A stretch of DNA of 64,000 bases, taken from positions 4,340,001-4,404,000 of the forward strand of contig JBLDXI010000032.1 in assembly GCA_047495785.1 (NCBI GenBank), read 5' to 3'. The position numbers and the translations under genes were made by a program. The DNA comes from Lepidodermella squamata. Its lineage: Eukaryota; Animalia; Gastrotricha. Positions 1 through 64,000 of the stretch are shown here, piece after piece; the first letter of the stretch is position 1; every line of letters starts with the position of its first letter. The notes below the pieces were generated by a model. The model made no database searches, was not told where the DNA came from, and saw only the letters and a list, made by a program, of their open reading frames with translations.

Positions 1-3000
1 GTGTCGGCGTCGACATGCAGCCGAGACGGGATCACAACCCGTGGAACGTCATTTTTTTCGTATCTTTCCTGCTCATCGTCTGCTTTTTTGTAAGTTTCTT
101 GTCGGATTTAATCAACAGAATTGATAAAACAAATTTACTACAGATTCTGAACATGTTCGTCGGTGTGGTTGTTCACAACTTTCAAAAGGTTCAAGAACGC
201 GTTCGGGCCGAGTTCAAAGCTAAGAAACTGCTGCAGAAACAAGAAAAGCTGTTGAACCGGCTTCGGAAACGCTCTCAAATGAACCCTAACCGTCAAAGTA
301 AGTTCTGCGAAATTCCTTTGTCATGTCCTTTATTCGTGGTGTCGTTTTAGGACTTCTGGTTAAGCTTACTAAACGAAGCCCAATGACGCGAGTTACGCAG
401 ACCTCGCCGGCTCTTCAAACTCTCGACGCGACCTTGGCCAATCTTGAAGCCTCCCCAGCAATTACGCTATCCTCCTCGATTCCAGCCGTGAAAGTATCGG
501 TCGAGAACAAAGCGCCTGCCGAAGATCTGTCCTTCCTCGAGGAATATCCCTACTGGCGGCTTGTGACGTATCAAATCTTCACTCACAAGTACTTTGAGCT
601 TGTTCTCGCGGCAATAACAGCCCTAAACATCCTGGTTATGGCTATCGAATTCTACGAAATGCCTCCAGAGTTGCAAATGGCCGTCAAAATAATCGGCTAC
701 GTATTCACGGCTCTTCTCGTGCTCGAAGTCTTCGCCAAAGTTGCTGCTTTCGGCTTCTATCGCTACATCAGAGAACGCTGGAACCAGCTGGACGTCGCTA
801 TTGTTTTCCTATCATTCGGCGCCATCTATTTAGAAGACGCCTCATCGGTAGTCATTCCGGTCAATCCGACTCTGATTCGAGTAGCCCGCATTGTTCGAAT
901 CGCTCGTGTTTTCAAACTACTGAAAACCGCGTCCGGAATTCGCCGGCTTCTCGACACGGTTGGCCGCGCCCTGCCTCAAGTCGGCAACTTGACCTTGTTC
1001 TTCCTTCTTCTATTCTTCATCTACGCCTCGTTAGGCGTTGAAGTAACTAATTTATCTAATTATTTTCCGTTGATACTGGAATAATGTATTTTCAGCTGTT
1101 TGGCAAATTTGATGGCGAGTATGGCAAGTGTGAAGGCCTGTCGCGCCACGCCAACTTCCACAACTTCGGCATTGCCCTGTTGACGCTGTTCCGCATTTTC
1201 ACCGGTGACGACTGGAACGGCATCCTCAAGGACATGCTGCGGTTGTCGAACAATAAGGAAGAGTGCGCGCTGCTGATGAAATCGGCCGCCAATGCGACGC
1301 CCGATCGCGATTTCAACATCGAGTGCACCATCGCCGGCGTCCTCGCGCCCTTCTACTTTGTCTCGTTCGTGCTATTCGCCCAGTTCGTGCTGATCAACGT
1401 CGTCGTAGCTGTCCTCATGAATGAGCTTGAGGTAATAATGGTGTTCACTAGCTTTGAGAAGATTGATCTTGACTTGTTCTCTCTTGGCGCGTTCAATAGA
1501 GAATGGTAAAATGATTGCACCATTGATTTATTGACTCAACCATTTTTGAGCACTCTGACATTAACTGACGCTCTTCCCTTTACATCGCTGTATATTTAGA
1601 ACATACTTCAAAACGCCTGAATTGAACCCCGCCTTGAGGATTTATCCGCGAGAGTGGCAAACTTTTGCACGTTCGCATTTGATTTTTCCAATTTTTTCAG
1701 TGAAACATCATCCATGCTTTCAATATATATGTTTATCCGAGGCACATATCGTTATTCGTTATTTCCCAACAGCAATTACTAATCCATTATTTTTCATCAA
1801 TATTTATGCTTATATTGGCTAACAATTTGATGTGATTTCATTCCACAGGAGTCACATCGCCGCGATGCAATGGAAAAGCTGGAGAGACCTGAAAATGCCG
1901 ACGAGGAAAATATCGAGCAAAAAGCGGCCGTTATGGAGGAAATCGTTAAAACAGCTTGCCAAGACCTGGTAAATTAATTAAGATTATTTGCAATATTTTC
2001 TCGTTTAACCAATTAAACTGTGATGGTGTCCCTCGAAATCGCAGTTCGAGTGCAATTTTCAGTCTTGCGTAAAAAAGAAGAAAGTGGTCGTCAGACGGCT
2101 GTCAGTGAACATGAAACGAAGACGATTTAGCACAACTGGTAATTGGTCGAAAGTGTTGTTTCAATGGCGTGTCTCCTCGTATTAACTTGGAGTGGCAAAA
2201 AATAACATCCCCTGTGAAACCTCAAATTTAGTAAACATTTTAGCGGCGTATTTTTATCCTTTAGCCGCAGTTTACCCTGATGTAAATTTGGCGTGATATT
2301 AATTATTTAATTAACACCACTTTCATGAATTTTTAATTTCTATTTTCCAGGTCGATCAGCTTCAAGCTAAGCTGGGAACAACTCGCGATGAAGTGATAGG
2401 CATAGTTACAACGGAATATTTGATCCGCGAGCAGGAAAACGAACAAAGCTATACGCCGAACACTAACGTTGTCACTACGCCAGCCTCGGTGGAACAATCG
2501 CCTAGTCTGCTGGCTCTAACGGCGTCGCGGCCTGTTCTCGTCAGCCACAGTGACACGATGTGTACTGTTAGCGTGGAAGAGCGCAAAAAACGCCGCCAAT
2601 TCCGCGCGAGTCTCGACCAGCAAAGTCGATCCATCCAGCGCGAAGGCTCGCTGAAGGTGCGACGGCGGGAGAGCAGTTACATCTCTGTTGATGCTGACGC
2701 GCTGGAACAAATTTTCCACGATCTGGGCGACGCGTTGACGCGGAACAAAGAGCCACCTGGCGCGCAACGTTCCGGTTCACTGGTCATCGACGAGTTTCTG
2801 GAAATGCGACGGCGGGCTAGTCACCATAACTTTGCGGCGGTAACACCACCCTGCGGTGGTGCGGTGGTGCGTCGCCAGGCCAGTCAGCGGCCGCGAGTGA
2901 AACAGCAAATGGCTATCGACGAGGTGCTGGAGGCGAAACCGCGGCTGAGCGCGTCGTGCCACGACTTGGAACGCGCGACAGGCAAACCGGCGGCGACGAG

Positions 3001-3016
3001 CACACTGCCATTTTAA
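1..3016 (+). CDS. Cav3: T-type (Cav3-like) voltage-gated channel alpha-1 subunit, paralog A; 5'-truncated (end of DIII, III-IV linker, DIV, C-tail). Exons <1-89, 144-297, 351-1042, 1096-1431, 1849-1968, 2351-3016
   Basis: Cav3 motifs [23 protein letters not shown]4 [30 protein letters not shown], pore FTGDDW, and [22 protein letters not shown] introns join the ORF fragments in frame. Confidence 0.93.
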
Positions 3017-5046: not shown

Positions 5047-8000
5047 ATGGCGTCGTTCAAATCCAGAGATGGCGCTCGTCGTCGCGCCATTCGAAGGATA
5101 GGCGTCGCCGAAGAAGACCACTTCTGCGAAGATCGCATCATCGAGCCGGTTCGAGTCAAACTCATCGCCCCACCAACGCCGCGACTCGCGCCACTGGCAA
5201 ATGAAGAAATTACCATCATAAACAACGTCAACTACCAAAGCATAGCCAACGATCTGCCGGCAGTTGCTAATGAAGAACCGGCGAGTACGTGTTACATCAG
5301 ACCTCAGGAAGAGGAGAAGCGATATGCCGATACGTCGTTCTATTACTGTACTCGGCAGAATTCTTTCAGAAGGCTGATGATAGCGCTGGTCGAGTCAAAG
5401 TGGTTTGGACGGTTTTCTGTGTTCCTGATTCTAGTCAATTGTGCCTCGCTTGGTTTCATGGACACATGCGATTTCAACTGCATAATCTACCGCTGCCAGG
5501 TCATGCAAACCATCGATCTATGCGTGTTTGTCTTCTTCACAATTGAAATGCTGATAAAAATGATCGCGATGGGAATAGTCGGGCCGCGGTCCTACCTGTC
5601 GGAGCCTTGGAATGTCTTCGACTTTGTCATCATTGTCGTCGGCTCGACCGAGTTCGTCTACGGCAAGGGTGCGACGGCGTTTTCGGCGATTCGAACCTTC
5701 CGCGTTCTGCGCCCACTGCGCGCCATAAATCGAATACCGAGTTTAAAAATTTTGGTCGAACTGCTGCTTGAAAGCTTGCCTATGCTCGGCAACGTGCTCA
5801 TGTTCACGTTTTTCATCTTTTTCGTCTTCGGAATCTGTGGCATTCAACTGTGGGCCGGTGTGCTGCGGCATCGCTGCTTTTTCCCTGATACGCCCGAGTT
5901 CAAGGCGCAAATCGAGGCGCAGAACTTGACCCACTTTCTTATGGAAATGCCTAATTTCTACCGACGGCCCGGTGGCGGCGACTTTGTGTGCAGTCCTCAG
6001 TTTGGCATGCTGCGTTGTGAAGACATTCCGTTATTCGAGTAAGTTCTATTCATTCGAATCGCATCTTTTTTAGCCGTAAATTTCTCACCCAGGCAAGAAG
6101 GGTCGATTTGCGACCAGATTTTCCACGATGATGAAGCGATAATTTGCGGCAACCTGGTACCGAATTACACCGACTGCCGGCCGGGCGCGCCGAACCCGTC
6201 TCGCGAGACGGTCAGCTTCGACAACATTGGCGCCGCGTGGATCGCCATCTTTCAAGTAATCAACCTCGAATCGTGGACTGAAGTGATGTACTTCGTCCAG
6301 GATGCTTACTCTTTCTGGGTGTGGATCTACTTTGTCATTCTCATTGTGGTAAGTTTGATTTTCAGAGAATTACTCCAAAAAATTGATTCACTTTCTTAGA
6401 TTGGCTCATACTTTGCTCTAAACTTGTGCCTCGTCGTTATTGCCAATCACTTTCAAGAAGCTAAAAGCCGAACGTCGTCGCGCCTCGGCGGCACTCGTCT
6501 CTCGATAGATAGCACCTCAATCTACCTCCAAGTGCTAGACCTCATAGCTTACGGCATTCGGCAGTGCTTCGACTTTTTAAGCTGTGAAATCCCGCCAGTC
6601 ATACGCCAGCAGCAGCAACAAGCAGCTACGGCTGACGGCCGATCCACCGGCGGCGGTGGGGGCGAAGACAATCCGAGACGTGAAACTAGCTCAGAGCAAC
6701 TCGACCTCATCATGAGAGTCAGTGCTTATGGCATTTGTAAGTATTTTGCATAAAATCAATAATTTTTTTATTTACTTTATTTATCAACAGCTTTATCTGC
6801 TGCTCCTGTTGCTAACGGAGATGTAAATCGTCAGAAGAATAAACGTCCCAGTGTTTTTGTCAGTAAGTTATAAATAGCCACACAGTAAAGCTAAAGGATA
6901 ATTTTTGTGTTTTTTTTCAATCAGCTTTCATTCAACGTGAAGTTTCAGGCAGCCGGAAGTTTTTGCGCGATTTGTTCGAGCACGACAGCGTTGCGATGAT
7001 CATCATGGGCGTCATTGTGCTGAATACGCTCATCATGGGAACAGAACACCACCAACAGCCGGAATCGCTGACTGTCGCCATCGAAAGCCTCAACGTCGCC
7101 TTCACGATATTCTTCGCCGTTGAACTCATGCTGAAAATATACGCTTATGGCTTTCAGGTGTACATTCGCGACGGCTTCAACATGCTCGATTTGATTGTGG
7201 TGGTTGTCAAGTAATTACTTTTTCATTTTTAATTCGGTACAATCTAAGCTCTCTCACTAATTTTATTCAGCATTTTAATCAGGTATCAACTGGAAACAGA
7301 TTTAAAATCATTTCGAAAGACGCCGAAGAGAATGGGGTTGACTGATTATAATTTTCTTTAGGCTTCAATTTTCTTTCAATTTTATTGAGGGTTGTAGAAA
7401 TTTAGCATGTGTACTTCTTCTGCCTAGACAGAATTTTATTTTGCGCATCTGGAAATTTTCGGGATTATGTGAATTAATTTCGGATCTGTGGTTAAATTTT
7501 ACTCTAATCTAACATTTTAGTCTTGCTGAACTGGTGCAAGGCTCCGGAACCGGGTTCTTTGTGCTGCGAGCCTTCCGGTTAGTTCGCCTCGTCAAAATCA
7601 TTCGCTTCTTGCCCGGCCTACAGCGCCAGTTGCTCATCATGATGCGAACCGTCGACAACGTCGCCTCGTTCTTCTTACTCGTCAGTCTTTTCCTGTTCGT
7701 ATTCGCCATCATGGGCATGTCGCTGTTCGGCTGCCAGTACTGCCCGTCGCTGAACCGGTACATGCGGCCGGAATTCAAAGGCGTCGACGTGCCTGTCGGC
7801 GAGTTCGAACTCAACGACACGCTGATATTCGACCTGAGCCGTACTTCGAATGTCACGCTCGAGACGCCGAATGAAGGCCGCGACCACAGCCACGAGATCG
7901 ACCTGATATCATACTTCATATGCCCGCGAACCAACTTCGACACTCTTGCTTCGTCTTTATTCACCGTTCTACAGGTTTAAATCGATTTCCTCGAAATTTA

Positions 8001-11000
8001 ATGTATAAAAATGATCTAATTTCTCCAGGTTTTTACTCAAGACTCTTGGACCTCGGTGCTTAAAGATGGCATGACGGTCACATCGGACTGGGCTGGTCTT
8101 TATTTCGTAGCACTAGTGTCGATTGGCAACTACGTCCTCCTTAACTTGCTTGTCGCCATCTTGGTCGAAGGGTTCAGTAGCAGTGAAGAGGTTTGTAGAA
8201 AATGAAGTTTTTCGAATGACCTTTTAAAATTGAAATTAATGAAAACAGGACAGCTTAGCTAATAGCGAGGTCAGCCAGGATCATTTTTTTGCATCTGCAT
8301 TGCAAAAGGACAAGATAAAAACAGCGCCGATGGCATCTGTTGAGGTATGATCTTCGCCATTCTTATCTCATTGTAGCAAATAAGCTTCCGTTGCAGAGTT
8401 TATCGGACAGTTCAGAGACACCTCGCGGGTTGCCGATGCATACAATTTTAACAACACCCATCAGCAACTCGCCCATGTCGTGGCGGTCGACGTTGCGAGC
8501 CGCCTCCGCCAACGCCTGCTGCGGTCTCGGCCGCGTGATAGGCCAGCGGCGGCAGTATTCGTTCTTCGTCCTGTCGCCCGAGAACATGTTCCGCCGCGGC
8601 CTCGACTGCTTCGTGTCCAGCCGCTACTTCGACAACGTCATCTTGTTCTTCATCGTCTACAACTGCATTGTGATAACCATGGAGCGGCCGTCAATCAAAA
8701 AGGACAGTCTCGAGCGGAAGCTTATCGATCTATCTAATTCTGCCATTAATTTGATCTTCCTCATCGAAGCTATTCTTAAAATCATTGCCAAAGGTTTCAT
8801 TATCGGCGAAGGTGCCTACCTCAAAAACGGCTGGAATATTCTCGACTTCATCCTAGTAAATTGCTCAACTGTCTACACGCTGTTCGATCTGTTTTTCTCG
8901 CGGGTGGAGGAGGCTAAGATACTAGAAATTTTACGAGTTTTACGGCTACTACGAGCTTTAAGACCACTTCGAGTCGTCAACCGAGCTCCAGGGTTGAAAA
9001 TAGTCGTCGAAACACTGCTATTATCTGTCAAGCCGATTGGAAACATCATTGTGATAACATCGGCATTTTTCCTAATTTTCGCAATTTTGGGTGTTCAAAT
9101 GTTTCGCGGCTGTTTCTACCGGTGCGTTGTCGCCGGGTCGAAGTACGTGTCGAACCGGCAAAGAGCGGCGGCGCATCACGGCGGGCATCAGGCGTCTGAG
9201 GCTGAAATGCTGACATTTGAAACACTGTCTGGCGTGAAGAATCGGACGGATTGCGATGAGCTCGGTTCGACGTTTGAGTGGGAGAACGAGAGCTACAATT
9301 TCGACAACCTGCTGCAGGCCCTAATGACGCTGTTCGTTTTCGCCACCTTCGACGGCTGGGTCGAAATAACTCGCGCTGGTATCGACTGCGTTGGCACCGA
9401 TCTTCAGCCTATTCACGACTACAACCCGTGGCGCATTCTGTACTTCATTTCATTCCTGCTCATCGTGTGCTTCTTTGTAAGCCTGGGCATATCTAAGATT
9501 TTTGCCGATGAATTATCATTATTTTACAGGTTGTCAACATGTTTGTTGGTGTGGTTGTGACCAATTTCGAAAAAGTCCACAAGCGGGTGTTGGCCGAAAA
9601 GGAAGCCCAGCGACGGCGTGCTAAACGCATGCAGATACCAGCCCAGAAAAAATTCAGCATACCCAAAAGTAAGTCGCCTCTTCATGTTTGCTTAATCCTG
9701 ATCTAATCCTGATGATTCGATTTTTCAAGAAAAAATGTTCAAGTGCATGAATCGAAGTGGTTCGTCGTCGTCGCGGCCGATGTCGATGTCGAACGAAAAT
9801 TCGAATGTTCGAGCACCACCAGCCAGTCGCGGGGAGCCTCCAGCTCGGAGACAAGGCATATCAATGTCACAGACCCAGGCCGAGCTACGTAAGATGATAT
9901 GAAGCTACTTTCATCCTTACATTTAGCGTTTTACTGTGCATTGATGTGATAATGACAACATTTTTGGCGATTGTTTTAGGTCTATTACGGCAGCGATTCC
10001 GAAGCAGTAAATACTTTATTAGAAAGCTTTTCCCATTGCGTTTCTTCTGAGCTCTGGTAGACGGGAGCTAGTCTTGATAACTTTAGAACTAGAAATTGCA
10101 CGTTAAAACTATTATTTCACCCCTTTGACATTTCTGGAACGAGGACCTTGGGGCATCATCGTGAAATATTTCTGTATCATAACTTGGAAAAATTTACTAC
10201 GAAGATAGAGCGAAATATTCATTAATTTGAACGCTCTTTATTTCAACTTTTAGTAACCTTGAGTTCTCTATTTTCGTAGTCGTAGTATAATTTGCTTATA
10301 TTAGTGAGACCTGCTCAATCTGGATGTGGGCTTAATTTTGATTAATCCCCGCATTATTCCTGTTTGCATAAATTATTCCTCCTTAATGACCTATTTTTTG
10401 CAGTGCGAAATACGGTTCGACGCAACGCTCTATTGCATCGGTACCTGCAGTGGCGGCTGCGCATGTATCGCATATTCACACACCAATATTTCGAACTCGT
10501 ACTCGTCGCAATCACCACCGTAAATGTGCTAATCATGGCCGTCGAGTACTACCAAATGCCGAAAGAACTGCTGTTCGCCATCAAAGCCGCTAGTTACGCC
10601 TTCACAGTGCTACTCGGCCTCGAGCTCTGCATGAAAATGATAGCCATGGGCGTGAAGCGGTGCCTGCGCGACCCGTGGACCAAGCTCGACATATTCATCC
10701 TAGCCGCGTCATGTGCCGAGGTCCTCATGGAAGACTCCTACACGCGTTTCATGCCAATCAACCCGACTATTTTTCGACTTCTCCGCCTTGTGAGAATAGC
10801 GCGAGTGTTTCGGCTTTTAAAAACTGCGAAAGGAGTACGCCGGTTGCTGGATACCGTCAGCCAAGCCCTGCCTAAAGTCGCTCATCTCTCGCTCGTGTTT
10901 TTCCTCCTGTTTTTCATCTACGCCTCGCTGGGCGTTGAGCTATTCGGAAAATTTTCATGCCCATACGCAAAATGTGGCGGGCTGTCGCGTCACGCGAGTT

Positions 11001-12355
11001 TCGAACATTTCGGCATTGCCCTGCTAACCCTGTTCCGCGTCTTCACCGGTGACAAGTGGAACGGCATTCTGAAGGACATGCTGCACGTGTCGAGCGATGT
11101 CGACTACTGCTTGAAGCTGCTCGACGTTCAGGAGCAACTAGATGGCACGGTCGAGTGCCGAACAGCCGGCTACACGGCCCCATTCTTCTTCGTGTCATTC
11201 GTGCTAACCTCTCGATTCGTACTCATCAACGTCGTCATTGCCGTACTCATGAGCCAGTTGCAGCGGTCACAGCGTGAAGAAGCCGACGAGGCGAATGCCG
11301 ACCGCGTTAATATAACGCGAATTTTCCACACCAAGAAGGCGCCGCCTAATTCGGTGAGTTCAAATTCATCGCACAACGCAGATTTTTTTTAATTTATTTC
11401 AATGCATTGAAAGTGAATTAAATCAGTATTTTTCTGGAGATTTTGGAAAATTACACCTTTAAAATTACAGAACGTTAGGGAACCTATTCGTAAGAATGAG
11501 GTTGCTACTCAGGTTTCAATCGGACCATCGTTTCGATGGGTAAGTGTAACGGAATAACAAAAAGCACTCGACGACAGCTTCCTTGCACGGAAAATATTTC
11601 AAAAAATGGCACTTTTTCGCTTACAACACAATGCAAAAAATAATTTCACAATAGCATGGCTCTTCTTTCTAAAATCTCGAGCGCACATTGAAATTCGCAT
11701 GTGGGTGTTAATTTGAGTTCATTCTGTTTTGCAGGTTCAAAACAGCGAAGAAGATCTTGTGGTGGAGATGAACACGCTGTTTCACTACGGCAGTCGTTAC
11801 GGCACGCGCGATACCGGTCTGAGCGCCGCCCAGCACCACCAACGCCTCGCCTCTGTCGCTAGCTACCCGACGCGGCCGGTCAGTCGGCAGCCGTCCAGCC
11901 GTCGCCCGAGCCACTTCAGTGTCAGCAGTCGCGAACTCGGCGGTTCGATACGGCTGATCGACGCCAGCGCGCCGTCTCTCAGCAGCCTGTCTGCCCGCGC
12001 TCTTCAGTCGCACCGGCCGTCGTTCAAAGATCATCGGCGTTTGCCGCGAAACGCCTCAACAAGGTCGTCGAACAGAAGCAGTAAGCGGCGAGTTTCGCTT
12101 CGGATGAAAGCGTCCAGCCTGCACGGTGCCATCGACGACCCTCGCATCCGGCTGTGGACCGATGCGGCTCTGCGACATCAGCACTCGCTGCGTGGCGACA
12201 CCGCGAGCTCGGCATCGACTGTCGGCTTGGAAGACTGCAGTGACGTCATCGACAACACGGTGACGTACTACGAACCGCCGCCGATAACTGTTCACCAGGA
12301 AGAGGAAGATGATCTACCCAGCAGCAATGTCGAGTCATTTTGTATAGATGTCTGA
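5047..12355 (+). CDS. Cav3: T-type (Cav3-like) channel, paralog B, complete four-domain multi-exon gene
   Basis: DI S4 [29 protein letters not shown], pore INLESW (E 6268); NLCLVVIA plus gating-brake-like helix; DII pore FTQDSW (D 8041); DIII pore ATFDGW (D 9351); DIV pore FTGDKW (D 11051). First in-frame ATG is 5047, and the start is less certain than the body. Confidence 0.93.
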
Positions 12356-12995
12356 CGATGAAAGTTGGAATTACGACTGTGTAAAATCTGCGTGAATTCA
12401 ATATTCTATCAATATTTTTCAACAATATTTTTTGTACTTCAAGAAGGAGAATGCAGGTCAAATTTGAGCAATAAAATGAATTCATTATTAGTGTCGTGTT
12501 GAATCATAAAATTGCACTAAATTTAACCTAATAGAACTGACAACAATATCTGGTGCTCAGACGTGAAAAATATGGCATAAATGCCTCCTTAATCCCTATG
12601 AAGACCGCTCATACCAATGCCGGAGAGGTGGCTGAGATCGCCGTGCGCGTGCGGCTGCGTTTCTTCGCATTATAAAATTTGATCTTGTACCGAGAGACAA
12701 GCACGTGGCTAAAGCAGCCAAGAGATTATCTCGTTTACGTTATCTTTTACGCATATCTCTTCCAAGGAGGTACCGCTAATTTAGACGTGGGCACCTTTAA
12801 TCCTCGGCTATAAGTCGCGAATTTTTTCGAAGCAAATCTGCTTGTTTACCGCCTACTTGAAACGCCCTCTCAACTGCCAAAAAATTATGGTTTAAAAGCT
12901 GCCGGACACACCTGTAAAATCAACATTCGCTGTTTTCGACCCTGAATTCAAGTTGCTTTTTCTCTACGTTCGAAGTATTCACATTACCTGAAGCC

Positions 12996-13528
12996 ATGAT
13001 GAAGCTAGCTATCGCAATTTCTGCCATTATTGCTCTCGGCTTGATCGACCAAGCCCTAGGTACCGTTTTGTTGATCCAATGATGGGATGATTTTTCAATG
13101 TACAATTTTTACAGCTGTCAAATGCATCGTTCACGGCCAAGTGACGACTAACGCAGTCCCTGGTAATGCTACATCTTGCAACGGTGACTATTGCTACAAG
13201 ACCTTGGTGGTGCAAGACAGCAAGAACTTCACCACCCGAGGCTGCTCTTCGATGTGCATGAGTTAGTTGTGCTAATAACGTAATTATTTCATAATTTAAT
13301 CTTGTTATTTGCAGCCGGAGGCGTTAAGATCAGCGAAAAGTCTGCACAGAATCAATATTGCTGCTCAATGGGGTGAGTTCACTTGAGTTCGAAGTATTGC
13401 ACGACATCGCTCATCTCATTTTTTCATCCAGTGACAATTGCAACTCTGCTCGTGGAGCCTTCTCGACTGACTTTGTCCTCCCCGTCGTCATCGCAACTGC
13501 TGCCGCTTTCGTCGCTTTCCGCCGATGA
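12996..13528 (+). CDS. Three-finger (Ly6/uPAR/Quiver-like) GPI-anchored protein TF1, 4 exons
   Basis: Spliced: MMKLAIAISAIIALGLIDQAL-AVKCIVHG...SCNGDYCYK...TTRGCSSMC...QYCCSMGDNCN-SARG...AFVAFRR*. Signal peptide, 8-Cys pattern ending CCxxxxCN, hydrophobic C-terminus. Confidence 0.88.
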
Positions 13529-13869
13529 ACTCGTGATCAACAATAATAAAATCCTGAAATTAATGATCCCTTGAACCCTGATCAAAAAATAAGTGCTTAA
13601 TTCAGCTAAATTCAAATAAATGCGGATTCAGCTGGGGAATTTATTTTGTTTTGGATTCGACTGAAGGTAAATGCAGTGAGCTCAACAGTATTGATTTTTT
13701 TCTGTAGTGCAGAGCTGCCGTGACGAATAATTATTATTCCAGTAATTTTTTTGTAAAAGTACTTTTGTTATGACCGTCGCTGTCTCAAGAGGGCCATTCA
13801 CACGGATAAAAAACGTAATAAAAATCTGCGATTTTTCTTGGAGCAAATATTTGATCTATTTTATGGGAA

Positions 13870-15223: not shown

Positions 15224-15319
15224 AGTCAGATATTTCAATTTCACTGCTTTAATCGCAACCTATCAGCTGTGATAAATGATGTAATAAAATTCATTGCGAT
15301 GAGTCATAATGCTCGCAGA

Positions 15320-34179: not shown

Positions 34180-34189
34180 TAAAGGATTC

Positions 34190-40082: not shown

Positions 40083-40084
40083 TG

Positions 40085-48199: not shown

Positions 48200-48557
48200 T
48201 TTGAAACAAGTTCGATAAAAATGGAAATTACCAGGACCCTACCCCCAAACTCCGAATTTTTGTAGATGTGCCCTAAAACTACAAAATCGTGGTTGCCGGC
48301 AAGGGCAGTGATGAGGCAGCGAGCTAGTCCGATCAAGATTCGAGGCATATGACCCGAAAAAAGAAGATCGGCAACTTACCACCAGTACCGAATAATAAGC
48401 TCGAAATTTGGCGGCGAAAATTCCGAATTCTCAGTCGAACCGCACCTTCGCGCGGAGCGGAGCGCGAAGTTGGAAATCTGATTTGGGAAACTATAGCTTC
48501 GCCTTGATGGCAGTTTCTCACCAAAATTATACGAGGATAACGGACAACGGTATAAAT

Positions 48558-51065
48558 ATGAACGCTTTTTGCACTTTTATCGTCCTCTGCTGCCGGCTGT
48601 TATTTTTCTTGTTTTTCTCATTGCTCGATACGGTGTCTTCAGGTAGCACTAATTGCTTGATGATGAAACCTTGTCACGTGTATGTGGAAACGTGGTAACT
48701 ACTAAGCCCTTGACTAAAATGGCGGATTATTTTAACCATTTAATAACACCTTCAAATGACAAAATTAAGTTTCTCCCATTCTGCATCACTTATAAACGCA
48801 TATCCTTGTCAAAGCTAAAGTAGAAACCAGCCTCGCAACTATAAATCGGTTTTCCGAACCTGTCGACTTCCAAGTTATAGCCGAGAATACATCGCTAACT
48901 ACCATGAGATAAATGGATATGGCACGAACTCGTCCTTGGTGTAAAAATGATCTTCCTAGCTTCAAACCGTGGAGCAATACATATTAATATTTAATAATTT
49001 TTGATGAAATGATGTCATTATTAGATAGGCTCCAGGTCAACATTAGTTACAATACATGAGTCGATTGGCTGTGCCAAAATCTCGAAAAACTCATATTCCC
49101 ACTCATCTGCTGATAATCCTTCTTTTTAATCCATTGCTCATCTTCGCAACTGTTGGTACGTTCGGAACTTTTATGAAAGATACTTCTTTTTAGCCGGCCT
49201 TTATGCCGTTTCAGAGAGTCCAAACACTACGAAGCCGCTGGATGAAAAGGTGCGTATTGTTTCCGATTCCAAAAGTTTCATTCGACTGATGAATTCATGT
49301 ACAACAGCAAAGATGCGAACGAACAAAGCAGCTATTAAGTCTTTACGATGCAGACAACGATGGGGAAGTTCGCCTAGATAATGTGTCAAATCTATGCGAC
49401 ATACTCGTTCAGCAAGACTTTCAATCGTCGTTCACGCGTTACAAAGATTGTGATATCGATTTCTTGAATTCTGACGAAAATGCATACGACATGAAGCGGA
49501 CCAGCGTAGCTGAAAGATACGGCTACGGGACACTGGCTATTGCCGTAATTAACATTCTACCGATCGGCTTATTTTTCATTGTTCCAAAGCCGTCCCATCC
49601 GAAGTATCGTCATGTGATGATGGCTCTCATGTAAATAGTGAACAAAACTCACATTTTTATTATTTTTCGCAATTTTTTAGAGCACTCGCGATGTCAACTT
49701 TAGTATGCGATACAGCCCTGCATCTTGTTCCGAAGGTCCCTACATTTTTATTTCATATTTTCGCGTTATTGTTGCCTTGAAATCAGGCTTTTAATTTTAG
49801 AAAAACAACAAACCAAGTTTCAGGCAAACTGATAGTAATCACAGATACTGTCCTGAAGGAGCTTCTAATGCTCGTTCCAATCTATGGACTTTACCTGTGA
49901 GTCTTACTTCCCTTTTTCCGATTACATGCTCACTCCAACTTGCGATATAGATTCGAGATGATCGTCGGAACACGACAGCACGTAAAAAAGCACAAAGGCT
50001 TCAATCGACAGCAATCTTATGCAAAGACTGGGACCCGGGATGCTCATCTGGAATCGAACGATGACGGATCCACGAATGAAATCATCAGTTCCAGGTCATC
50101 AGATTTGGAAGCTGCTAAATTAAGATCACGGCGTTTCAGCCTGGCAGTCGGGCCAGGAACTCATTTGACTGAACTGCGATCGAACAGCAGTACAGCGCAA
50201 TTCGAGGTATAACCTGATCCTGTGGGGAAAGAAACATAAACCCTCTAAATCTGCTGTGTTGCAGAGGAATGCCGTTGGAAACTCTGAAGTTCAGAAAAAG
50301 TCAGTCCGTCGGCAAATATCTCATTTCATGGAAAGCAGAATCCCAGGTAATAGTTTTGAAGACGTCTTCATGGCTTCACTAGAACTTCTTTCTCATTTTA
50401 TCAGAGGTGCACCGTGTAATGCAATGCTTTGTCGAAGGTGATAATACCGGTTTTCCAAGTTATTATTAGCTATACATTTGCAAACCTCTTCAGAATGTTT
50501 ACCGAAAAAAGGATTGGGATGGGTCATCATAATCAGTATGTTTTTCAAGGCTAACTTTATTCGTTACATTTGAGTGTAACTGCCTTTCAGCTGATGCTGC
50601 CCACAGTGTAAGATGGCTTCGAATTTTACTTCATATAGACTATAACGGTGTACTATCATTTTAGGTTCTGGACGGAATCGCTATTGGTAAGTTTCTTGCA
50701 GTCGCAGCTTGGTCTACCTGAATTCACGCGACGTTTAGGAGCTGCTTTTTCCACGAGTGTTCTTAGCGGTGTATCAACTTCAATCGCCGTTGTACGTTTT
50801 AACTTCAACTTTAAGCAAACAAATAATGCTAACATTAGTCGTGAAACAGTCTTTCCAAGCCATCCCATTTGAAATCGGCGACTTTGCAACGCTGATCACT
50901 ACCGGCGTAACTTGGCGAGGCTCATTGATTTGGCATGTTTTCTATTCAATCATTTCGTTCATCGGCCTCTATATCGGCTTGGAGGTGTCCACAGATGACG
51001 CTGCTCGCCAATGGGTGTACATTTTTATCGCAGGCGTCTTCCTTCATCATGCCCTTAGTGAATTC
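48558..51065 (+). CDS. SLC39/ZIP metal transporter, LIV-1 subfamily-like, many small exons; last exon (TM8) not resolved
   Basis: Signal peptide, ERYGYGTLAI, ALAMSTLVCDTALHLVP (cf. ALAVGTLxGDALLHLIP), GWVIII, DAAHSVLDGIAIGAAF, GVSTSIAV, IPFEIGDFATL, AGVFL..AL. Confidence 0.78.
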
Positions 51066-52929
51066 GTAAGTAGCGAGATTGCTTAGTTAATTTTTCTCAA
51101 GCCACTTTTTCCTTGGGACTAATAGTAGATGGACTCGACACTTCCTATCTAACGCATAATAAATCGTTCGGGGAGACCGGAGAGGCAAAAAACGTGTGAA
51201 TTGATCGCGTGTTGTTTTGATCGCAGAAAAAAATGGCCGATTAACAAAAAATTCAACCGCAAAACCAGCATCCCACCATTACGCGAATTTTATGTCGTCG
51301 ATTTTACGCTGGGCACATGTTTACTCCAAAACAACACACCTTTTTCTTGAATTAATTGAACCATCGCATAGATCATAGTTCGAGGATCGCAGCGATGAAA
51401 AATTTATCGGCTATTTAACTTTAGAAGCCAGTGCAATTTCGCTTTGATTATAAGCTACCGTGATCAGACCTGCGCCTTGTGCGCATAATTTTTAAGGCTG
51501 ATCAATGATATTTTCACTGACTTTTGGGGTGAAAATGCACAAAATAAGGCTTGTTCATCGGACTCATTGGCCGATTACAATAGACTTCGCAGTTCACGCA
51601 GTGAATTTAATATTAAACGATTCCCCACAATTCCATAGGTATATCAATTTACGATGCTATTTGGCATTTTGCTGGCATTTTGGCATTATTGCATTTTGAA
51701 ACAATTTCATGGCTAATATGGTAGAAATCGTAACATCTAAAAGGGCATTTGATCGGAGGCCAATTGACATTATGTTCCGCTTTCCATTACATCTCAACTA
51801 TTTTTAAACAAATGAATCAAATAATGGGGAAAGGTATGGATAAAAATATTCACACGAAAGGATGCTAGTATGTTTAAAAAAGTTATATTGAAGTTATATT
51901 TTAACTTTGCTAAATATTTTGCAAACTTTATTCCGAAATCAAGCGGAACCAACCTCTAATCCTAACGATCCTAACGCTAACTTTCGCTACTGAAAAATTG
52001 GCTAGAAAAGCCAAACCCAAATTTAAATGGTGTAAAAATAGTTAGGATTACGCGGAACCTTTTTATCAATGCGCCGAAAAATCCTTGCAAATTTAGAGAT
52101 AATTATTCCCATATTCAGTTGTTCTTCTGAATAATGAAAAAAAATTCTTATTTAGGAAGTTGAGATTTAATTATTAATTTGTTGAATAATATTTTATTTT
52201 TTGGCATCGCAGCGTGCGTCCTTCGTTGCTCTTTTTGAATCTTCAAGAATTATTTTCATATCGCTTATACCTGCGGAGAAATCGTGACCCCATTGCCCAA
52301 GATTGGCAATTTTTCGCCGCTTAATGGGAGAAGGCTGTGTGTTGTTGTAAAAAAAGATTATTTTCATTCATAAATTTAGCGTGAAAAAAAATCGCGATTC
52401 AGCCATTTTTTGCTCCCGTCCGAATGATTTTGAGGAGTGTCGAGTCCATCTACTATTAGTCCCAAGACTTTTTCGGCTAATAGATGCCGCAGTTATGTCA
52501 TATCGAAGAAAAGTTCTGGACGTTCCTCCTACTTCAACACGTCGGCATTGTACTTGGATTTGCGGTCATTTTCATTATAACAATCTTCGAGGAACCTTTA
52601 CACTATTCATTTAGAATAAGAAATGCATGACCTTTGCACTTATTATCTATGACTAAAATGTTTACATTAAAAAGAATCACTGAATAGGCATGCGGGTCAT
52701 TTCTTTCCTCTCGAAAACACAGATTTTATGAAGACGCGATATTCAAAACTTCTGTGCATCATCCCAAGCGGCCGATGTGTGAGATGAAAACAAAGCACTT
52801 TTATTGCATTTCGATTTTGACACTGCTCGCCCGATGTAACCGTGCTACTCTATTATACATACTTTGACCGCTGAAATTCATCGCGCCGTGAAGTTCCTGA
52901 CTAATGAATTGAATACATTTTTCGAACAG

Positions 52930-55900
52930 ATGGCGACGAGATCGCCGAATAGTGAGGTGTTGCAGGCCAAGTCATTCCTTTGCCTAAGCCTGGACAATCC
53001 ATTCCGGCGAGCTGCTATTAGACTCGTCTCCTCAAGATAAGTTCTTGCTATGTTGCCATCATCATTTATCCCATATCATTTTATATACATGGTTCGAGCG
53101 ATTTTCAATATTTATGATCGTAGTCAATTCAATGGCTCTTGGCATGGTCGACCCATGTGACGTCAAATGCCGCAAGCCAGTTTGCGCCACACTCCAGGTT
53201 GTTGAAGACGTAATATCAGCCTTTTTCGCGGTCGAAATGTTGTTAAAAATGCTAGCGATGGGCATAACTGGAAAGGGCGCCTATTTAGACGAGTCGTGGA
53301 ACCGCTTCGACTGCTTCATCGTCATAATTGGCACTTCCGAGTACATATTCGCCGACCAAGAGATCAACTTGTCAGCTATCAGAGCCATTCGAGTTCTGCG
53401 ACCACTTCGGGCGATCAACAGAATTTCGAGCCTCCGTCTTTTGGTCACTCTGCTGCTTGACATTCTTCCCATGCTAGGCAATGGTAAGGTCTCAACGTTA
53501 CACCTTGAAATCTTTGAAATTGCCCTTTTCAGTGATGATTTTCTGCTTCTTCATTTTCTTCGTATTCGGCATTGTTGCAGTTCAACTTTGGGCCGGGATG
53601 CTTAGGCATCGGTGTTTTTTCCCTAATGATCTGTTCACATCTAACTCAACCGCCCAACCGCCGCCTTTCATGCCTCAGTACTACAGCCAGCCACATCGCG
53701 AATTCATTTGCTCACCCGCGGGCGGGGAGACTCACTGCGGGCAGATACCGCAATACGAAAAGCACAGTTCGATGTGCGCCGACATGTTCCCGGCTTCTAC
53801 CGAACCGACCAAACTAATGCTGTGCCGCCGCTGGGTTGCGAACTACACCGAGTGCCGGCCTGATGGGCCTAATCCAGCCCGCGGTACCATTAACTTCGAC
53901 AACATTGGATCGGCGTGGATCGCTATTTTTCAGGTCATATCGCTCGAATCTTGGACGGAGGTCATGTACATGATGATGGTGAAGCATATTCGCAAAGTTC
54001 TTGAACATTTTCTAAATCGAGTTATGCAACACAGGATTCGTTTTCGTTCTGGGTTTGGATCTTTTTTATCCTGCTTGTCTTGGTAATTCTGGAGTATTGA
54101 TTTTTCTATTCGTTTAAAATTTGAAAATGTGTAGATTGGGTCCTATCTAGCGGTTAATTTGTGCCTCGTGGTCATTGCAACTCAATTTTCCGAGACGAAA
54201 TTGCGCGAGGCTGAAAGGATGGTAAGTTAGGCGAGGACATTTTTTTTAATGCATTGCTCACGCTTTCTGCTCTTAGAAAAAAGAGCGACTGGCTGAAATC
54301 GATTCTGCAAGCTCATCCTCATCAATGTCGTCGATTATGTCGACTGACGACGGTCTGTACGCCCAGATAATCGACCTGATATTCCACTATATTCGCTATG
54401 TAAAACGCAAGCTGTGCCGAGTGAAATCGAAAAAGCGTCACCTTAGTCTTCTCGTAATGTCCGTTAATGTTCCTGGCAACCGGCGTCTCACTCGCCAGGG
54501 CTCTTCGGTTGGCGGCGGGGCTTGCCCGGGTTGCCGACATCGTCTGCGTCTGATGCGACATGGCCGGCTAAGCAAAGCTGAGAGCAAAGAGCCGTGTCTG
54601 CTATGCGGTCGGTCGCCGAATTTCGAGCAGCTATTGTCGAAATTTCCGTACGGAGAAAAGCGATACTGCAAAAACAACTGCCTTAACGGTTTTGTCTCCT
54701 GTATCCAACGATCTCGAACTTGGCTAAGGGACCTACTCGAGCATGATGCGTGTGTTGCCGCTGTCATGGGTACGATTGTTGTCAATGCCGTAGTGATGGC
54801 GCTCGAACACCATAACCAACCAGAAGCGCTCACTTCTTTCATCGAGGTCATGAATATGATCTTTACTACAATTTTCGTCACCGAGCTCTGCATCAAGCTG
54901 TTTGCATACGGGTTCGAAGCTTTCATTCGAGAGGCCTTCAACGTCTTGGATGCTGTTGTTATCGCGATTAAGTACCTAATTAAATTTTTTATTTTTCTTG
55001 TTTAATCTCGATGTGTTTGAAGTATTGCGGAGCTGTTTTTCGACCAGGACGGTTCAAGCTCTGGCTTTGCGGTGTTGAGGCTGTTCAGGCTTGTGAGGAT
55101 CGTCAAAATCATTCGATTTCTACCGGCTCTGCAAAAGCAACTAATGGTTATGGTGGCTGTTGTCGATCACGTGGCCACTTTCTTCCTTCTCCTCGGATTT
55201 TTCTTATTTATTTCGTCACTGTTGGGCATGTCGCTTTTCGGCTGCAAATTCTGCGAGAAGACCACACGAGGAAACGGCGGAAATATTCTTTTGAACGGTA
55301 CAATGTCCACCTGTGCTCTTCAGGTAAACTCATATCCAGGAACAACAGCAAACAAACTATAAAATAATTCAGGTTATCGACATCGATCAAGTCGAGGCAC
55401 TGGAGCGTGGCTTAGCGGCCATGCGTTCAGCTGCTGACGATGAAGAGGAAGTCTACTACGGCTGCTCTATAGCCAACTTCGATTCACCCTTCCAAGCCAT
55501 TTTCACTGTTCTACAGGTGTTCACTCAAGACGATTGGGGTGCCGTAATGCAGGATGGCATGCATTACACGTCACCGTGGGCTGGTGTTTATTTCGTTTCT
55601 TTGGTAACCATCGGCAACTACATCATTTTCAACCTTCTGGTCGCCATTCTTGTCGAAGGTTTCAGCAGCAAAAGCGTAAGAAATTTTCACCCTTAACTAT
55701 AGCTACTACTATAATTCGGCTTTGCAGCAAGACGATTTGCTCGATTGCGAGAACAAAGCTTTGGAAATTATAAAAAAGAAGACTGAAACAAACCTCCAGT
55801 TAGATCCGGAGGAGCTCGAGAATGGCGCTGTCGATGGGGCAAAAGCAGAGAGCAATTTTGCCCGTGCAGCTCGTTGTTGTCGCTGCATGGGCAGCGTTTT

Positions 55901-58900
55901 CGTTCGTTGTTGGGCAGCTGAGCTTTCAGATCGGGCGTTGTTCATCTTTCCAAGAGATGCCTTCCCACGGCGGCAACTTCGTCGCATGTTCGCGTCCGAG
56001 CTCTGCGATAAAATCTTCTTCTTCGTCATTATTGGCAGCTGTTTGGTTATCGTAATCGAACGGCCTGGAATTGACAAAGACGGCTTGGAGCGTTTATTGA
56101 TAACCTATGCCAATTACGCTTTCACGGTGATTTTCTTCCTGGAAGCTTTTACTAAAATCATCGCGTATGGCTTCTGCCTCGGTCGCAAGACATACCTGCG
56201 CAATGGCTGGAATGCGCTGGATCTTTTCTTGCTCACCATTGCGATTGTCGATATCACGCTCGAATTTGATGATTCGGACAAGAAGCTCCTACAGGCGCTC
56301 CGAGTTCTTCGGCTCCTTCGCGCGCTACGTCCTCTACGCATAATCAGCCGATCGCCAGGCTTGCAAATCGTCCTCCAAACATTGATGATCTCAATCAAGC
56401 CCATTGGGAATATTAGTAAGTTTGATAAAGCGACCCATAAAGATTCATTTCTCTTCTGATTTAGTACTCATTTGCTGCTTTTTCTTCTTGATATTCGCGA
56501 TATTGGGTGTACAGCTGTTCAGCGGGTGTTTCGCGCGTTGCTTAGCGCCTCGATCTGCTGTTATCCCGAACGCATCAGCAATCGTATCAGCTTCAGGTGC
56601 CGAAACCTACTCGGAGTGGGCCACTGAAGCTTTGGCTAATGTTAAAACGCGTAACGACTGCACAGCAGCCGGCTTTGACTGGGAAACTGACAGCTATAAC
56701 TTCAACTCTCTGCCTGAGGTGGGTTCTGTCTGAAATGCCAATGAAAAGCTTATTAATCCTCCATTCGTATGCGTCAGGCTCTGATGGCTCTTTTTGTATT
56801 CGCAACTCTTGACGGGTGGACTGACATCACCCGCAGCGGCGTCGACTGCGTGTCGCCCGACCAGCAGCCCATTCGAGATTACAATATGTGGGCCTACGGC
56901 TACTTTATTTCCTTCCTGCTCATCGTCTGCTTCTTCGTATGATGCAACAACTTTGTTTCGAGAGCTTATATTTTTTGAGCTTTTGAAAGGCACTGAACAT
57001 GTTTGTTGGCGTGGTTGTTAATAATTTCCAGAATGTCCAACGTCAGGTGAAACAGCACATCGAGAAACAAGCGACCGGCGAAGCTAGAGCATCAGATGCG
57101 TTTGCTGCAGCCTTAGCCAAGCAGTATACTCGGGCAAACTCAACAGGTATCGCAGTTTTGCGAAATCCAAATTAAAAAAATCGCACTTTCGAGATGTTTT
57201 TTTGCCTAATCTTCTGTTCATTCCTGTATAGTATCGTACGCATCTGGACGACGTGTGACTGTCGGTGAGAGGAGCTATTATTAGAGATTGCCTCAGATCT
57301 TAGTATAATCTCTCTATTAGTGACCCAATTTTGGTTCGATTTCCCCGTTTGGCGACGACGCCTGTGTTTGCTTGTAATGCACAAGTACTTTGAGTATACC
57401 GTCATTGGAGCGACTGTTCTAAACGTTATCATGATGGTAATTACTATCTGTCCTACCTCCTCACTTTCACTTCAATTGAACCTTTTAAGACGTGCGAGTA
57501 TTACATGATGCCACCGTGGCTTGTAAGCACCATTACCATAGCTTCTTACGTGTTTCTCGGCCTACTCGCTATCGAAGTCAGCCTTAAGTTGACAGCATTC
57601 GGACCAGCTCGCTATTTTTCCGATCGTTGGAATCAAAGTGATGTTGCCATAGTACTTCTCTCAATCTGTGGAATCATATTGGAAGAACTGCCTAAGGAGT
57701 CTGTTCCCGTCAATCCAACTGTCGTTACCTTTCCACGCGTTTTCCGAATCGTTCGAATCCTCAAGCTGTTAAAATCAGCTTCGGGCGTTAGAAAGCTCCT
57801 GGAAACATTAAGCGAAGCAATCCCTCAAGTCATCAATCTCTCTCTGCTGTTCTTCCTACTCTTTTTCATCTATGCTTCCCTCGGCGTGGAACTCTACGGC
57901 AATTTCGACTGCCATTACGAAGTTTGCGAAGGCCTGTCGAGACATGCGAACTTCAAGAACTTCGGCATGGCGCTTCTAACGCTATTCCGCATCTTCACCG
58001 GCGATAACTGGAACGGCATTCTGAAGGACATTCTCTGGATGTCGAACGACGAACAAGAGTGCACTACCTCGGGCGATAAGCATGGCCACGATCATGAGGC
58101 CGTTGGAGGCATTGTATGCTAACAAGTTTCTTTCAGCATTTGCTCTTTGACTCTCTTCATTTCGTAGGCTTGCGGAGTGATACACTCTGTTGCGCCAGTG
58201 TATTTTGTCTCTTTCGTGTTACTCGCCCAATTCGTGCTGATCAACGTTGTAGTTGCAGGTAATAATAGGCCTTATTATGATGCCATAACTTCCACATATT
58301 AAGCTTTGTTCATTTCAATTTGAAAACCCATGGCTTCATCTAAATTTTTGCGTAATACTTTAGTTCTGATGAGCCAACTTGAAGACGCTGCGAAGCGTAT
58401 CGAGAATGAAAATGCACAGATGGAGGAGGCGAAGAGACTAAGCAAGCGTAGTTCGAGGTCAAAATTCCTAGACGAAGACACAATCCTAAGTCGGAGCACG
58501 TCTCGCTATTCGGTATGGTTTCAACTTTAAAATTTCCTTGTTCGATTATTCACAAAAATCCTCAGGCGACCAATTACAGTGGTATTGCAATGCACACATT
58601 GAACGGGCATAATTCGACAGATACTATGGCGAGATACCGCGAGCAGGAGACGAGCTTGACCGATGACGATGGACCCGTAATGACACCCGTATCGACGCGC
58701 CGACTGGCCGGCATGATGAGCCCGCGCATGCTAGCCTCGTTCGATGAAGATGAAGACGAAGACGAAGAGTTTTTGAGGCCATTGCCCGAAATAATCAACG
58801 AAGACCACCTCTGGCTGACCCGCGTAATGGAGCCTGAAGCTGCTAGCGTAGCTTCTTTTGAGTACATCCTGCAACACCAGGTAACATCCGCGTTTTTATC

Positions 58901-59360
58901 AGAATTAGTGGCTAAAAATGCGTTGAATCGATAGGACATCTGCGATGCAGAGTACTTAGCGATGCGGCTTCGAAATTTGACGCTTGATACAGATTCGGCG
59001 GTTGTCAGTGATATCACGATGTCGCCGCTGGTCTCGCCCAGCGGCTCGCCTGTTCGCGTCGTTCATCGGGCGCGCTCTTTCGACCGGCCGCCGGCCGTGC
59101 GCCAAACCATCACCCCGTGCCGCTCGCCCCTCGACATCATCGACGACTGTCCTCGCGTGCCTAAGCGCAGTACACCCGGGCGCTACGTCTACCTCCACAA
59201 CACGCCGACGATGATTGCACCCGTCAATAATGGTTTGGCGCGCACCTTTGCTCCGCCGGCTTCTCTCGAATCGCGGCGAGCACGCTTTGCAGGGAAACTA
59301 CCCGCCGTGCCCGAATCAGCAAGCGCTGCCTCTTTCATCGATATTATCGAATATATCTGA
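52930..59360 (+). CDS. Cav3: T-type (Cav3-like) channel, paralog D, complete four-domain gene; first intron is AT-AC
   Basis: N-terminal [20 protein letters not shown] pore ISLESW (53946), [15 protein letters not shown] (Cav3 gating brake), DII pore FTQDDW (55529), DIII pore ATLDGW (56811), DIV pore FTGDNW (58003). Confidence 0.94.
53037..53088 (+). other. Non-canonical AT-AC intron (52 nt, phase 2)
   Basis: TCA AG|ATAAGTTC...TTTTATATAC|A TGG TTC GAG restores ..VSSRWFER.. . Read unspliced there is an in-frame TAA, and no AG occurs between 53042 and the WFER codons. Confidence 0.78.
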
Positions 59361-62600: not shown

Positions 62601-64000
62601 GGCAGCAAACTTCGACAACGTCGGGCAAGCGCTGTTCACTGTGCTGCAAATCTTCACTCAGGACGACTGGGGCGCTATAATGAAAAATGGCATGCATTTC
62701 ACGACAGATTGGGCCGGTCTTTACTTCATAGCCATCGTCACGCTTGGCAACTACATCATCTTCAATTTGCTCGTCGCCATCCTTGTCGAGGGATTCAGCA
62801 GCAAAAGTGTAAGTTTTTGACTGAGAAATCAACCCTTTGCGAAACTTAATTGCAGGAGGAAGCCGTTATGAAAGCGAACAAATTGTTGGCAGCTCAGGAC
62901 GATGAATTGAGCACTGCCAAGGTGCCGGTTGATATCGCCGAAGAAGTAAAACGGCAGAATACTATGCTATGGCCGTGCCGCATCGCGCGAAAGTACCACC
63001 TGCGTCTGAAAAGCAAATTTCTAGCGATGTGGAACGCTGACGGCGATGCGAATTTTTCGCTGCTAATTTTCAGACGCGATCACAAGTTGCGCGTGTTTTT
63101 GAACGCAGTACTGACGTCGCAAACCTACGAAAGCGTTCTGCTCGGCTTGGTCTTCGCCTCTTGCTTGTTGATCGCGCTCGAAAACCCGCGCATCGGCAAA
63201 AACAGCTGGGAGCGCCTCGCCCTGAAATCAATCAACCACGCCATCAACATCGCGTTCATGATCGAATGTGTCGGCAAAATAATCGCGCAGGGCTTTGCTT
63301 TCGGTCGCGATGCTTACCTGCGTTCGTGGTGGAACGTCCTCGACTTCTTCCTCATTTGCATTGCATCCGTCGATGTAGCCCTAGATGTGCTTGATCCTAA
63401 TGTAGCCAACCGTAAAATGATACAGGTACTGCGAGTTTTGCGCCTTCTTCGTGCTCTCCGGCCACTGAGAATGATCAACAAAACGCGCGGACTCAAGGTT
63501 GTCATTGAAACATTGCTGATGTCGATCAAACCTATTGGAAATATAAGTAAGCGTTTATACAGCGCGCCTTTAGATAACACTTTAAATTAATTCTAACAGT
63601 TTTGATTTGTTGCTTCTTCTTCGCGATTTTCGCAATTTTCGGAGTTCAGCTGTTCCGCGGCTGTTTCGCGCGCTGCGTCGCTCCAAAGCAAATGCCCGTT
63701 AACTTTTCGCTGATATATCCTGGCGATGGCTCTGACGGTCATAACGTCTCCAAAGAGGCTTACATCCGATGGGCCATGGAGACAATTTCGACTCTCGACA
63801 ACAAAACGCAGTGCTTGAACCACGGCCTAGAGTGGGAGACGGAGTCGTACAATTTCGACTCGTTGCCAGAAGCCCTCATGGCCCTATTCGTTTTTTCGAC
63901 TCTTGACGGCTGGGCTGATATCACGCGAAATGGCGTCGCTTGCGTTGGTGTCGACCAACAGCCTATTCCTAATTACAACCCGTGGAACTTTTTGTATTTT
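59665..64000 (+). CDS. Cav3: T-type (Cav3-like) channel, paralog E; DI-DIII, 3'-truncated by the window edge
   Basis: [22 protein letters not shown] pore ISLEGW (60901), [14 protein letters not shown] pore FTQDDW (62662), DIII pore STLDGW (63905). Confidence 0.93.

Follow-up and report, generated by a model that had tools for sequence, protein, structure and literature searches.

How many T-type (Cav3) calcium channel genes can lie together in one animal genome, and are they old, distinct and intact? Firing, pacemaking and low-threshold secretion all depend on T-type channels for their threshold. The question is raised by a stretch of 64,000 nucleotides from the gastrotrich Lepidodermella squamata (contig JBLDXI010000032.1, positions 4,340,001 to 4,404,000), called the window below, in which a first-pass annotation made from the letters alone had proposed five divergent and intact Cav3 genes, A to E. 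Our analysis makes it very likely that the five loci encode pore-forming alpha-1 subunits of Cav3 channels, that they arose by old duplications within one animal lineage and that they have been kept by purifying selection.

The window has a G+C content of 42–50%, lacks long bacterial-type genes and contains many open reading pieces with very short gaps between them. Loci were detected with six-frame segments similar to gene B and with a profile built from 24 full-length Cav3-like reference proteins. On the two strands of the window, both approaches returned five collinear groups, each in profile order (Table 1); beyond these groups no Cav3-profile match that could mark a sixth locus was found on either strand of the whole 64 kb. 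Pfam placed Ion_trans domains in open reading frames (ORFs) at 1–1.1 kb, 5–12.4 kb, 40–44 kb (minus strand), 53–58 kb and 59.6–64 kb. Gene models were made with a purpose-written dynamic-programming gene finder, which takes its codon log-odds from long ORFs of the window and its donor and acceptor matrices from the introns of an initial round. Intron length enters as a prior, codons that align to the Cav3 profile earn a bonus, and the output was curated by eye against the paralogs and the profile.

In the resulting models, genes B, C and D each encode four six-helix repeats in one polypeptide, running in order from repeat I S1 to repeat IV S6 and covering the profile from about 50–80 to about 1600. 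For A and E, the portions of the same four-repeat build that fall inside the window are present. In each of B, C and D a polyadenylation-type hexamer lies 17–115 nt past the stop codon; in D an AATAAA is found 26 nt after the stop. The models are tentative, having no transcript support, in poorly conserved linkers and tails, namely A after 1431, B at 9669–10403 and 11354–11734, and D at 56990–57436. Although made independently, they reproduce the five loci of the first-pass annotation almost to the base, and they bear out its remark that channel genes cross both window edges, with A cut at the start and E continuing past 64000. The same annotation had noted that no frameshifts remain after intron removal. 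In our models zero stops or frameshifts are left in B, C and D once introns of 42–62 nt are taken out, as produced by a gene finder that avoids stops by construction and does not report frameshifts as such.

The genes form two co-oriented pairs, A and B lying about 2 kb apart and D and E only 305 nt apart, while C is inverted. D is complete with tail and stop codon, and E starts with an N-terminus and repeat I of its own. Unrelated genes split the array, occupying 28 kb between B and C and 6.8 kb between C and D. The word “tandem”, which had been applied to the entire array, thus fits A to B and D to E; it does not fit C, nor the groups that unrelated genes hold apart.

The family to which these genes belong was assessed by comparing the long exons of each with all solved structures. 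Human Cav3.1–3.3 came out top for every gene, 100–170 bits above Cav1, Cav2 or Nav. The scores were 282–300 bits for gene A against Cav3.1/3.3/3.2 (Nav and Cav1/2 at most 179), 373–414 bits for B against Cav3.x (best 414 / 388, next family 288 / 214; Cav1/2 at most 288, Nav at most 242, NALCN at most 87), 395–410 bits for C (Cav1/2 at most 247) and 342–349 bits for D (Cav1/2 at most 234). The repeat II exon of E scored 200–207 bits against Cav3, with no other chain at an E-value of 1e-30 or better. When repeat III of B was searched exhaustively against 1.84 billion representative proteins, it matched Cav3 channels at 36–41% identity, those of amphioxus, bee, snail, tunicate and Hydra, and protist four-repeat channels, Cav1, Cav2 and Nav ranked lower. 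For a sister protein, P0015, all 119 of the 119 further proteins among the matches listed share ion-channel domains, and nearly all the named ones are T-type channels. In the profile alignment, the window genes are 40–48% identical to amphioxus and Hydra Cav3 and 26–29% identical to Cav1 and Cav2.

A careful maximum-likelihood tree (IQ-TREE, LG+C20+F+G4 with posterior mean site frequencies, 33 sequences by 1038 columns) groups Hydra Cav3, the window genes with their relatives and the bilaterian Cav3 channels in one animal Cav3 clade (support 100/99), apart from Cav1, Cav2 and the protist channels with a Glu-Glu-Asp-Asp (E-E-D-D) filter. A tree with reference channels had been suggested as a check at the time of the first-pass annotation, and in it all copies stay together in Cav3 and are not split among families. 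Cav1/2, Nav, NALCN and protist four-repeat identities, considered for each copy, are excluded by the scores and the tree.

The S4 segments retain their arginine/lysine ladders along with adjoining motifs specific to Cav3 (RPLRAINR, KIxRFLPxLQ). The proximal I–II linker that follows S6 of repeat I aligns with the Cav3 gating brake in B to E (profile positions 385–414, up to 455; 30–39 bits), and the LYAQI-type helices predicted from this alignment are clear in C, D and E and weaker in B. Neither an AID (GY..WI) nor an IQ-type motif was found in any gene model, and the AID of the Cav1/2 references sits in the same alignment columns. The GPHH calmodulin module is absent from the tails of the models. 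With Pfam, the exon of C that encodes repeat IV and the tail gave only Ion_trans/PKD_channel, and the tails of A and B gave nothing. Judged by their sequences, the five loci are separate and distinct members of the Cav3 family.

In one respect these channels depart from canonical Cav3. The selectivity filter reads Glu-Asp-Asp-Asp (E-D-D-D) in B, C and D, and in the incomplete genes the repeats present agree, with E-D-D in E and a final D in A (IFTGDDW in repeat IV). Repeat II carries TQDSW or TQDDW where the 22 canonical Cav3 references that align at all four filter positions have TQEDW, and no insertion or deletion accompanies the change. Other pore-loop residues differ too: B and C have Ser for Asp at position +1, and B has Lys at +1 of repeat IV. 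The metagenome relatives L001, L002, L003 and L005 described below follow the same filter pattern, and the repeat II Asp occurs in all members of the group seen. In the literature searched, neither a natural E-D-D-D Cav3 nor a larger Cav3 repertoire is described. The earlier statement that all copies carry Cav3 hallmarks therefore stands for the S4 motifs, the gating brake, the lack of AID and IQ motifs and the position within the Cav3 clade, and fails for the filter.

The outer loop of repeat II is also unusual. In the models it comprises 67 residues with three Cys in B, 66 with four Cys in C, 61 with four Cys in D and 73 with four Cys in E, compared with 17 residues and one Cys in the alignment for human Cav3.2. 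Cav3-profile scans of the window revealed no second copy of the exon encoding this loop in any gene. The II–III linkers and C-terminal tails give local alignment z-values of about 0 against shuffled sequences, and so the description of the loops and tails as mutually unalignable holds for them; it does not extend to the I–II linkers, which align in part (z of 5–18). Gene C differs further in its voltage sensors, with a Cys in place of one Arg in repeat III S4 (in the 42619–43225 region) and a His together with an Asp-rich stretch after repeat II S4.

How old is the set? In the conserved core the paralogs are 44–54% identical, a level comparable to the 47% between the Cav3 channels of Hydra and amphioxus. 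Synonymous sites are saturated between all pairs of window paralogs, and for this reason we give the proportions of synonymous and nonsynonymous differences (pS 0.67–0.82, pN 0.33–0.41) and not dN/dS. The close relatives in public protein data are only ORFs on ENA metagenome contigs, and the window's own proteins are absent from the protein collection searched. L001 is the sister of A (74% identity in repeat IV; support 100/99) and L002 the sister of B (73%; 100/100), and the more distant L003 is sister to all others of the clade. The 11.7-kb contig L005 (ENA ERZ27332993, from another sample) carries two co-oriented Cav3-like genes with E-D-D-D filters at 2294–7753 and 8286–11680, about 530 nt apart, and a side-by-side pair is thus present in a relative as well. 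Its second gene is the sister of D (68% identity; SH-aLRT, an approximate likelihood-ratio support, of 98), and its first represents a paralog line with no counterpart in the window, as placed in a quick tree of 25 rows with SH-aLRT support only. L001 does not preserve the neighbourhood of A and B; there, a CUB-domain gene and a short-chain dehydrogenase come next.

Window genes and metagenome relatives form a single clade that contains nothing else (100/99). Within it C, D and E group together (100/100), with E as the sister of C plus D, and a sister relation between A and B has no support. Counting the metagenome relatives, the clade holds at least seven paralog lines. Since other organisms have a separate orthologue of each of A, B and D, the splits among A to E predate the separation from those relatives. 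In the pairs A/L001 and B/L002, 68–73% of residues are kept, pS is saturated and pN is 0.17–0.21. The duplications had been called old and lineage-specific, and both terms are upheld, the first by these orthologues and the saturated synonymous sites, the second by a clade that only metagenome sequences join.

The introns add a further record of this history. Nearly all are 42–62 nt long with GT-AG ends. We counted 29 intron positions in conserved columns, 11 of which are common to two to four paralogs in the same phase (taking 815 of B and 814 of C, D and E as one position); among them are profile positions 384 (phase 0, B to E), 657 (phase 2, B to E) and 1266 (phase 0, A to D). Gene B lacks five intron positions kept by C, D or E. 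The one exception to GT-AG ends is an AT-AC intron in D. It lies at the N-terminal end of repeat I, where B, C and E have no intron, and its donor, ATAAGT, is of the major type. Only with the AT..AC ends is ...RLVSS/R/WFERFS joined so that the frame is kept and the register matches E; GT-AG ends were tried, and every alternative runs into a stop.

Longer gaps of 310–515 nt separate some exons of A (1432–1848 and 1969–2350) and of B (7211–7520, 9889–10403 or 9669–10403, and 11354–11734). Inside these gaps there is neither an Rfam family nor a tRNA (ARAGORN), and no channel exon recurs there. The gaps in both genes may be real long introns, or they may hide small exons of unconserved linkers and tails. 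The metagenome relatives are far less rich in introns than the window genes, as seen in L001 (3147–4247) and in L003, which has repeats III and IV in a single 2.4-kb frame (8507–10918), and the window species would accordingly have kept or gained many short introns.

Could the number of copies come from the assembly, through uncollapsed haplotypes, duplicated contigs or a chimeric join? Beyond the general possibility, what might suggest this is that no single contig of one public run spans the stretch from D to E. That run, of DNA-like contigs, nevertheless covers 56500–62400 evenly, introns and spacer included and with no loose ends, and its pieces 59337–59642 and 59613–60137 overlap across the D–E spacer. 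With protein identities of 44–54%, differing intron sets, linkers that cannot be aligned and two such genes adjoining in the related organism of L005, an artefact is so improbable that we set it aside, in line with the doubt about haplotype duplicates voiced in the first-pass annotation. For the 3′ part of D (58203–58782), the same run shows a second allele, at roughly half the depth. All nine of its nine exon differences are synonymous in the model, five of them in the unconserved tail exon, which argues for the reading frame of D and for present-day purifying selection on this gene. A 58-nt deletion allele (58287–58344) lies within a 105-nt intron of D and would bring that intron to the usual size. 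No second-allele variants are listed in the E part of the covered stretch.

Several observations weigh against five maintained Cav3 genes. The hallmark E-E-D-D filter is found in no copy, the window holds only parts of A and E, and low-voltage gating cannot be read from sequence. Some intron positions are unique to one paralog (six or seven in D, three in C), in part with weak splice signals, and a broken copy bridged by a plausible 50-nt “intron” would escape the gene finder. C sits on the longest end branch of the five (0.78) and has lost one S4 Arg. Orthologues or polymorphism speak for A, B and D, whereas for C and E the signs of function are limited to an intact frame and kept motifs. A search of public sequencing runs found the locus in the one DNA-like run and in no RNA run.

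One or more copies, most likely C or E, might accordingly be a pseudogene, unexpressed or in decay, whose frame still looks open. This would agree with the lack of an RNA run, with the long branch of C and its S4 substitutions in repeats II and III, with the weak splice scores at some paralog-specific introns and with a gene-finder design that hides frameshifts. An unconstrained copy at 44–54% identity and with saturated synonymous sites would, however, have gathered stops. The conserved blocks of every copy are complete, ordered and joined by introns of typical length, pN is well under pS in all pairs, and the pore, S4 and S6 motifs are kept. We therefore regard a pseudogene among the five as improbable, and old genes retained by purifying selection as the better description of the set.

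The place of the window clade relative to canonical Cav3 is a separate matter. Canonical bilaterian Cav3 channels, from deuterostomes, rotifers, molluscs, an annelid, arthropods and nematodes, form a clade (95/98) that includes the fast-evolving rotifers and nematodes and leaves the window clade outside. Hydra, the window clade and the bilaterian clade make a three-way split without resolution in the careful tree. Forcing the window clade to join the protostomes costs 26 log-likelihood units (p = 0.034 in the approximately unbiased (AU) test), and forcing it to join the rotifers costs 15 units (p-AU 0.09). By these alignments the clade could represent the Cav3 of a lineage that evolves fast, or a separate branch of greater age, and the AU tests fit either. 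An older Cav3-like branch would have split off before canonical bilaterian Cav3 diversified, and would have survived and expanded only in this lineage. Its exclusion from the bilaterian clade, the weak rejection of a union with protostomes and the E-D-D-D filter common to all members all fit such an origin. Yet the window clade lies on long branches, so that its exclusion may be an artefact, and a union with the long-branched rotifer Cav3 is not rejected. On balance we think an older branch unlikely.

For the preferred reading, duplications within one animal lineage, a course of events can be proposed. Within the set, C, D and E are most closely related to each other and are co-located; local duplication with one inversion would thus have given rise to them, while A and B adjoin each other yet have diverged deeply. 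The products would be voltage-gated cation channels, probably low-voltage-activated. Cytoplasmic linkers and tails set the regulation and targeting of channels. The paralogs, presumably expressed and gated at low voltage, may be functionally specialised; they differ most in the repeat II outer loop, the II–III linkers and the tails. Elsewhere among invertebrates a single Cav3 gene makes use of alternative exons; here gene duplication may play that part. Going further, one may tentatively see in the clade an undescribed Cav3 sub-family with a natural E-D-D-D pore and at least seven paralog lines, in which duplication replaced outer-loop splicing, the members differ in Na+/Ca2+ preference and in regulation, and the split is perhaps pre-bilaterian; we hold this to be possible, with the odds against it.

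The remainder of the window is dense in genes of membrane signalling, including receptors and transporters besides the channels (Table 1). Two Cys-loop-like ORFs, with Pfam scores around or below the curated cut-offs, are predicted to be very divergent receptor subunits. A tRNA-Leu gene lies between the two ORFs of an amino-acid transporter, and thus in an intron of that gene on the opposite strand. In the C-terminal half of the two single-exon ANF_receptor ORFs, Pfam recognised no membrane or enzyme domain. The ENPP gene gave no match above 39% identity. Between C and D, which are divergently oriented, a 6.8-kb spacer contains part, at least, of a ZIP zinc transporter.

Table 1. Channel genes, selected elements and neighbouring features of the 64-kb window
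Feature	Position	Strand	Description and basis
Gene A	1..3016	+	5′ part before window start; end of repeat III S6, III–IV linker, repeat IV, C-terminal tail
Gene A, well-supported exons	1-89, 144-297, 351-1042, 1096-1431	+	Cav3 profile positions 1238-1582
Gene A, tentative tail exons	~1849-1968 and 2351-3016	+	Gene finder
Gene B	5047..12355	+	Four-repeat channel, ~1868 residues, 13 exons; profile positions 55-1596 in order
Repeat II pore loop of B	8029..8049	+	VFTQDSW; exon starts at 8029; Asp where Cav3, Cav1 and Cav2 have Glu
Stretch between B and C	12356..40084		Unrelated genes (Pfam); no Cav3-profile match
Cys-loop-like ORFs	14460-15223 and 37181-38530	+	Pfam
Amino-acid transporter	20186-22196	-	ORFs 20186-20887 and 21375-22196; Pfam
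tRNA-Leu, anticodon TAA	20943-21026	+	Rfam/ARAGORN
ANF_receptor ORF	27648-30155	+	835 residues; Pfam
7tm_1 ORF	31426-32103		Rhodopsin-type receptor; Pfam
ENPP	32835-33902		Pfam
ANF_receptor ORF	34190-36667	-	825 residues; Pfam
Gene C	40085..46096	-	Four-repeat channel, ~1750 residues, 15 exons; profile positions 71-1666
Spacer between C and D	46097..52929		No Cav3-profile match
ZIP zinc-transporter piece	50757-51086	+	Pfam
Gene D	52930..59360	+	Four-repeat channel, ~1807 residues, 19 exons
AT..AC intron of D	53037..53088	+	52 nt
Gene E	59665..>64000	+	3′ part beyond window; repeats I–III, 12 exons so far; profile positions 48-1256

A lineage with at least five old and conserved Cav3 genes would have the largest natural Cav3 repertoire found in the literature searched. 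Its E-D-D-D copies with long and variable outer loops would form a natural series for the roles of the pore ring and turrets in Ca2+/Na+ selectivity and gating, with a bearing on how excitability diversified in small animals with compact genomes. The window genes resemble canonical Cav3 (human Cav3.1–3.3, Lymnaea LCav3 and Hydra) in their four repeats, in 40–48% identity over about 1300–1400 core positions, in the S4 and S4–S5 motifs, in the gating-brake stretch, in the Asp residues of the repeat III and IV filters and in the absence of AID, IQ and GPHH. They differ in the repeat II filter, in the length and Cys content of the repeat II outer loop, in numbering at least five at one locus and in lying outside the canonical bilaterian group.

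Among the literature searched, the only calcium channel with an E-D-D-D filter is an engineered Cav3.1 mutant with the identical Glu-to-Asp change in repeat II. Described by Garza-Lopez et al. (bioRxiv 10.1101/626069), it conducts and is a working low-voltage channel, with slightly more negative activation, faster activation and slower deactivation. Unlike this mammalian point mutant made in the laboratory, the change seen here is natural, is shared with metagenome relatives and comes with other pore-loop changes.

The focus of diversity on a cysteine-rich repeat II outer loop recalls exon 12 of invertebrate Cav3 (12a/12b), an alternative exon that, according to PMC7382465, encodes this loop and changes Na+/Ca2+ passage in snail Cav3. 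That system has one gene with two exons, whereas here separate genes have one loop version each. Vertebrate Cav3 copies stem from whole-genome duplication and are unlinked. In gene number, invertebrates have been described with one Cav3 gene, cnidarians with two and vertebrates with three (PMC7456537), and outside vertebrates and cnidarians a single gene combined with alternative splicing is the described state (PMC7456537; PMC7382465). The cnidarian Cav3a/Cav3b and vertebrate Cav3.1–3.3 sets are, like the clade found here, independent and lineage-restricted Cav3 duplications (PMC7456537), but both contain fewer copies than its paralog lines.

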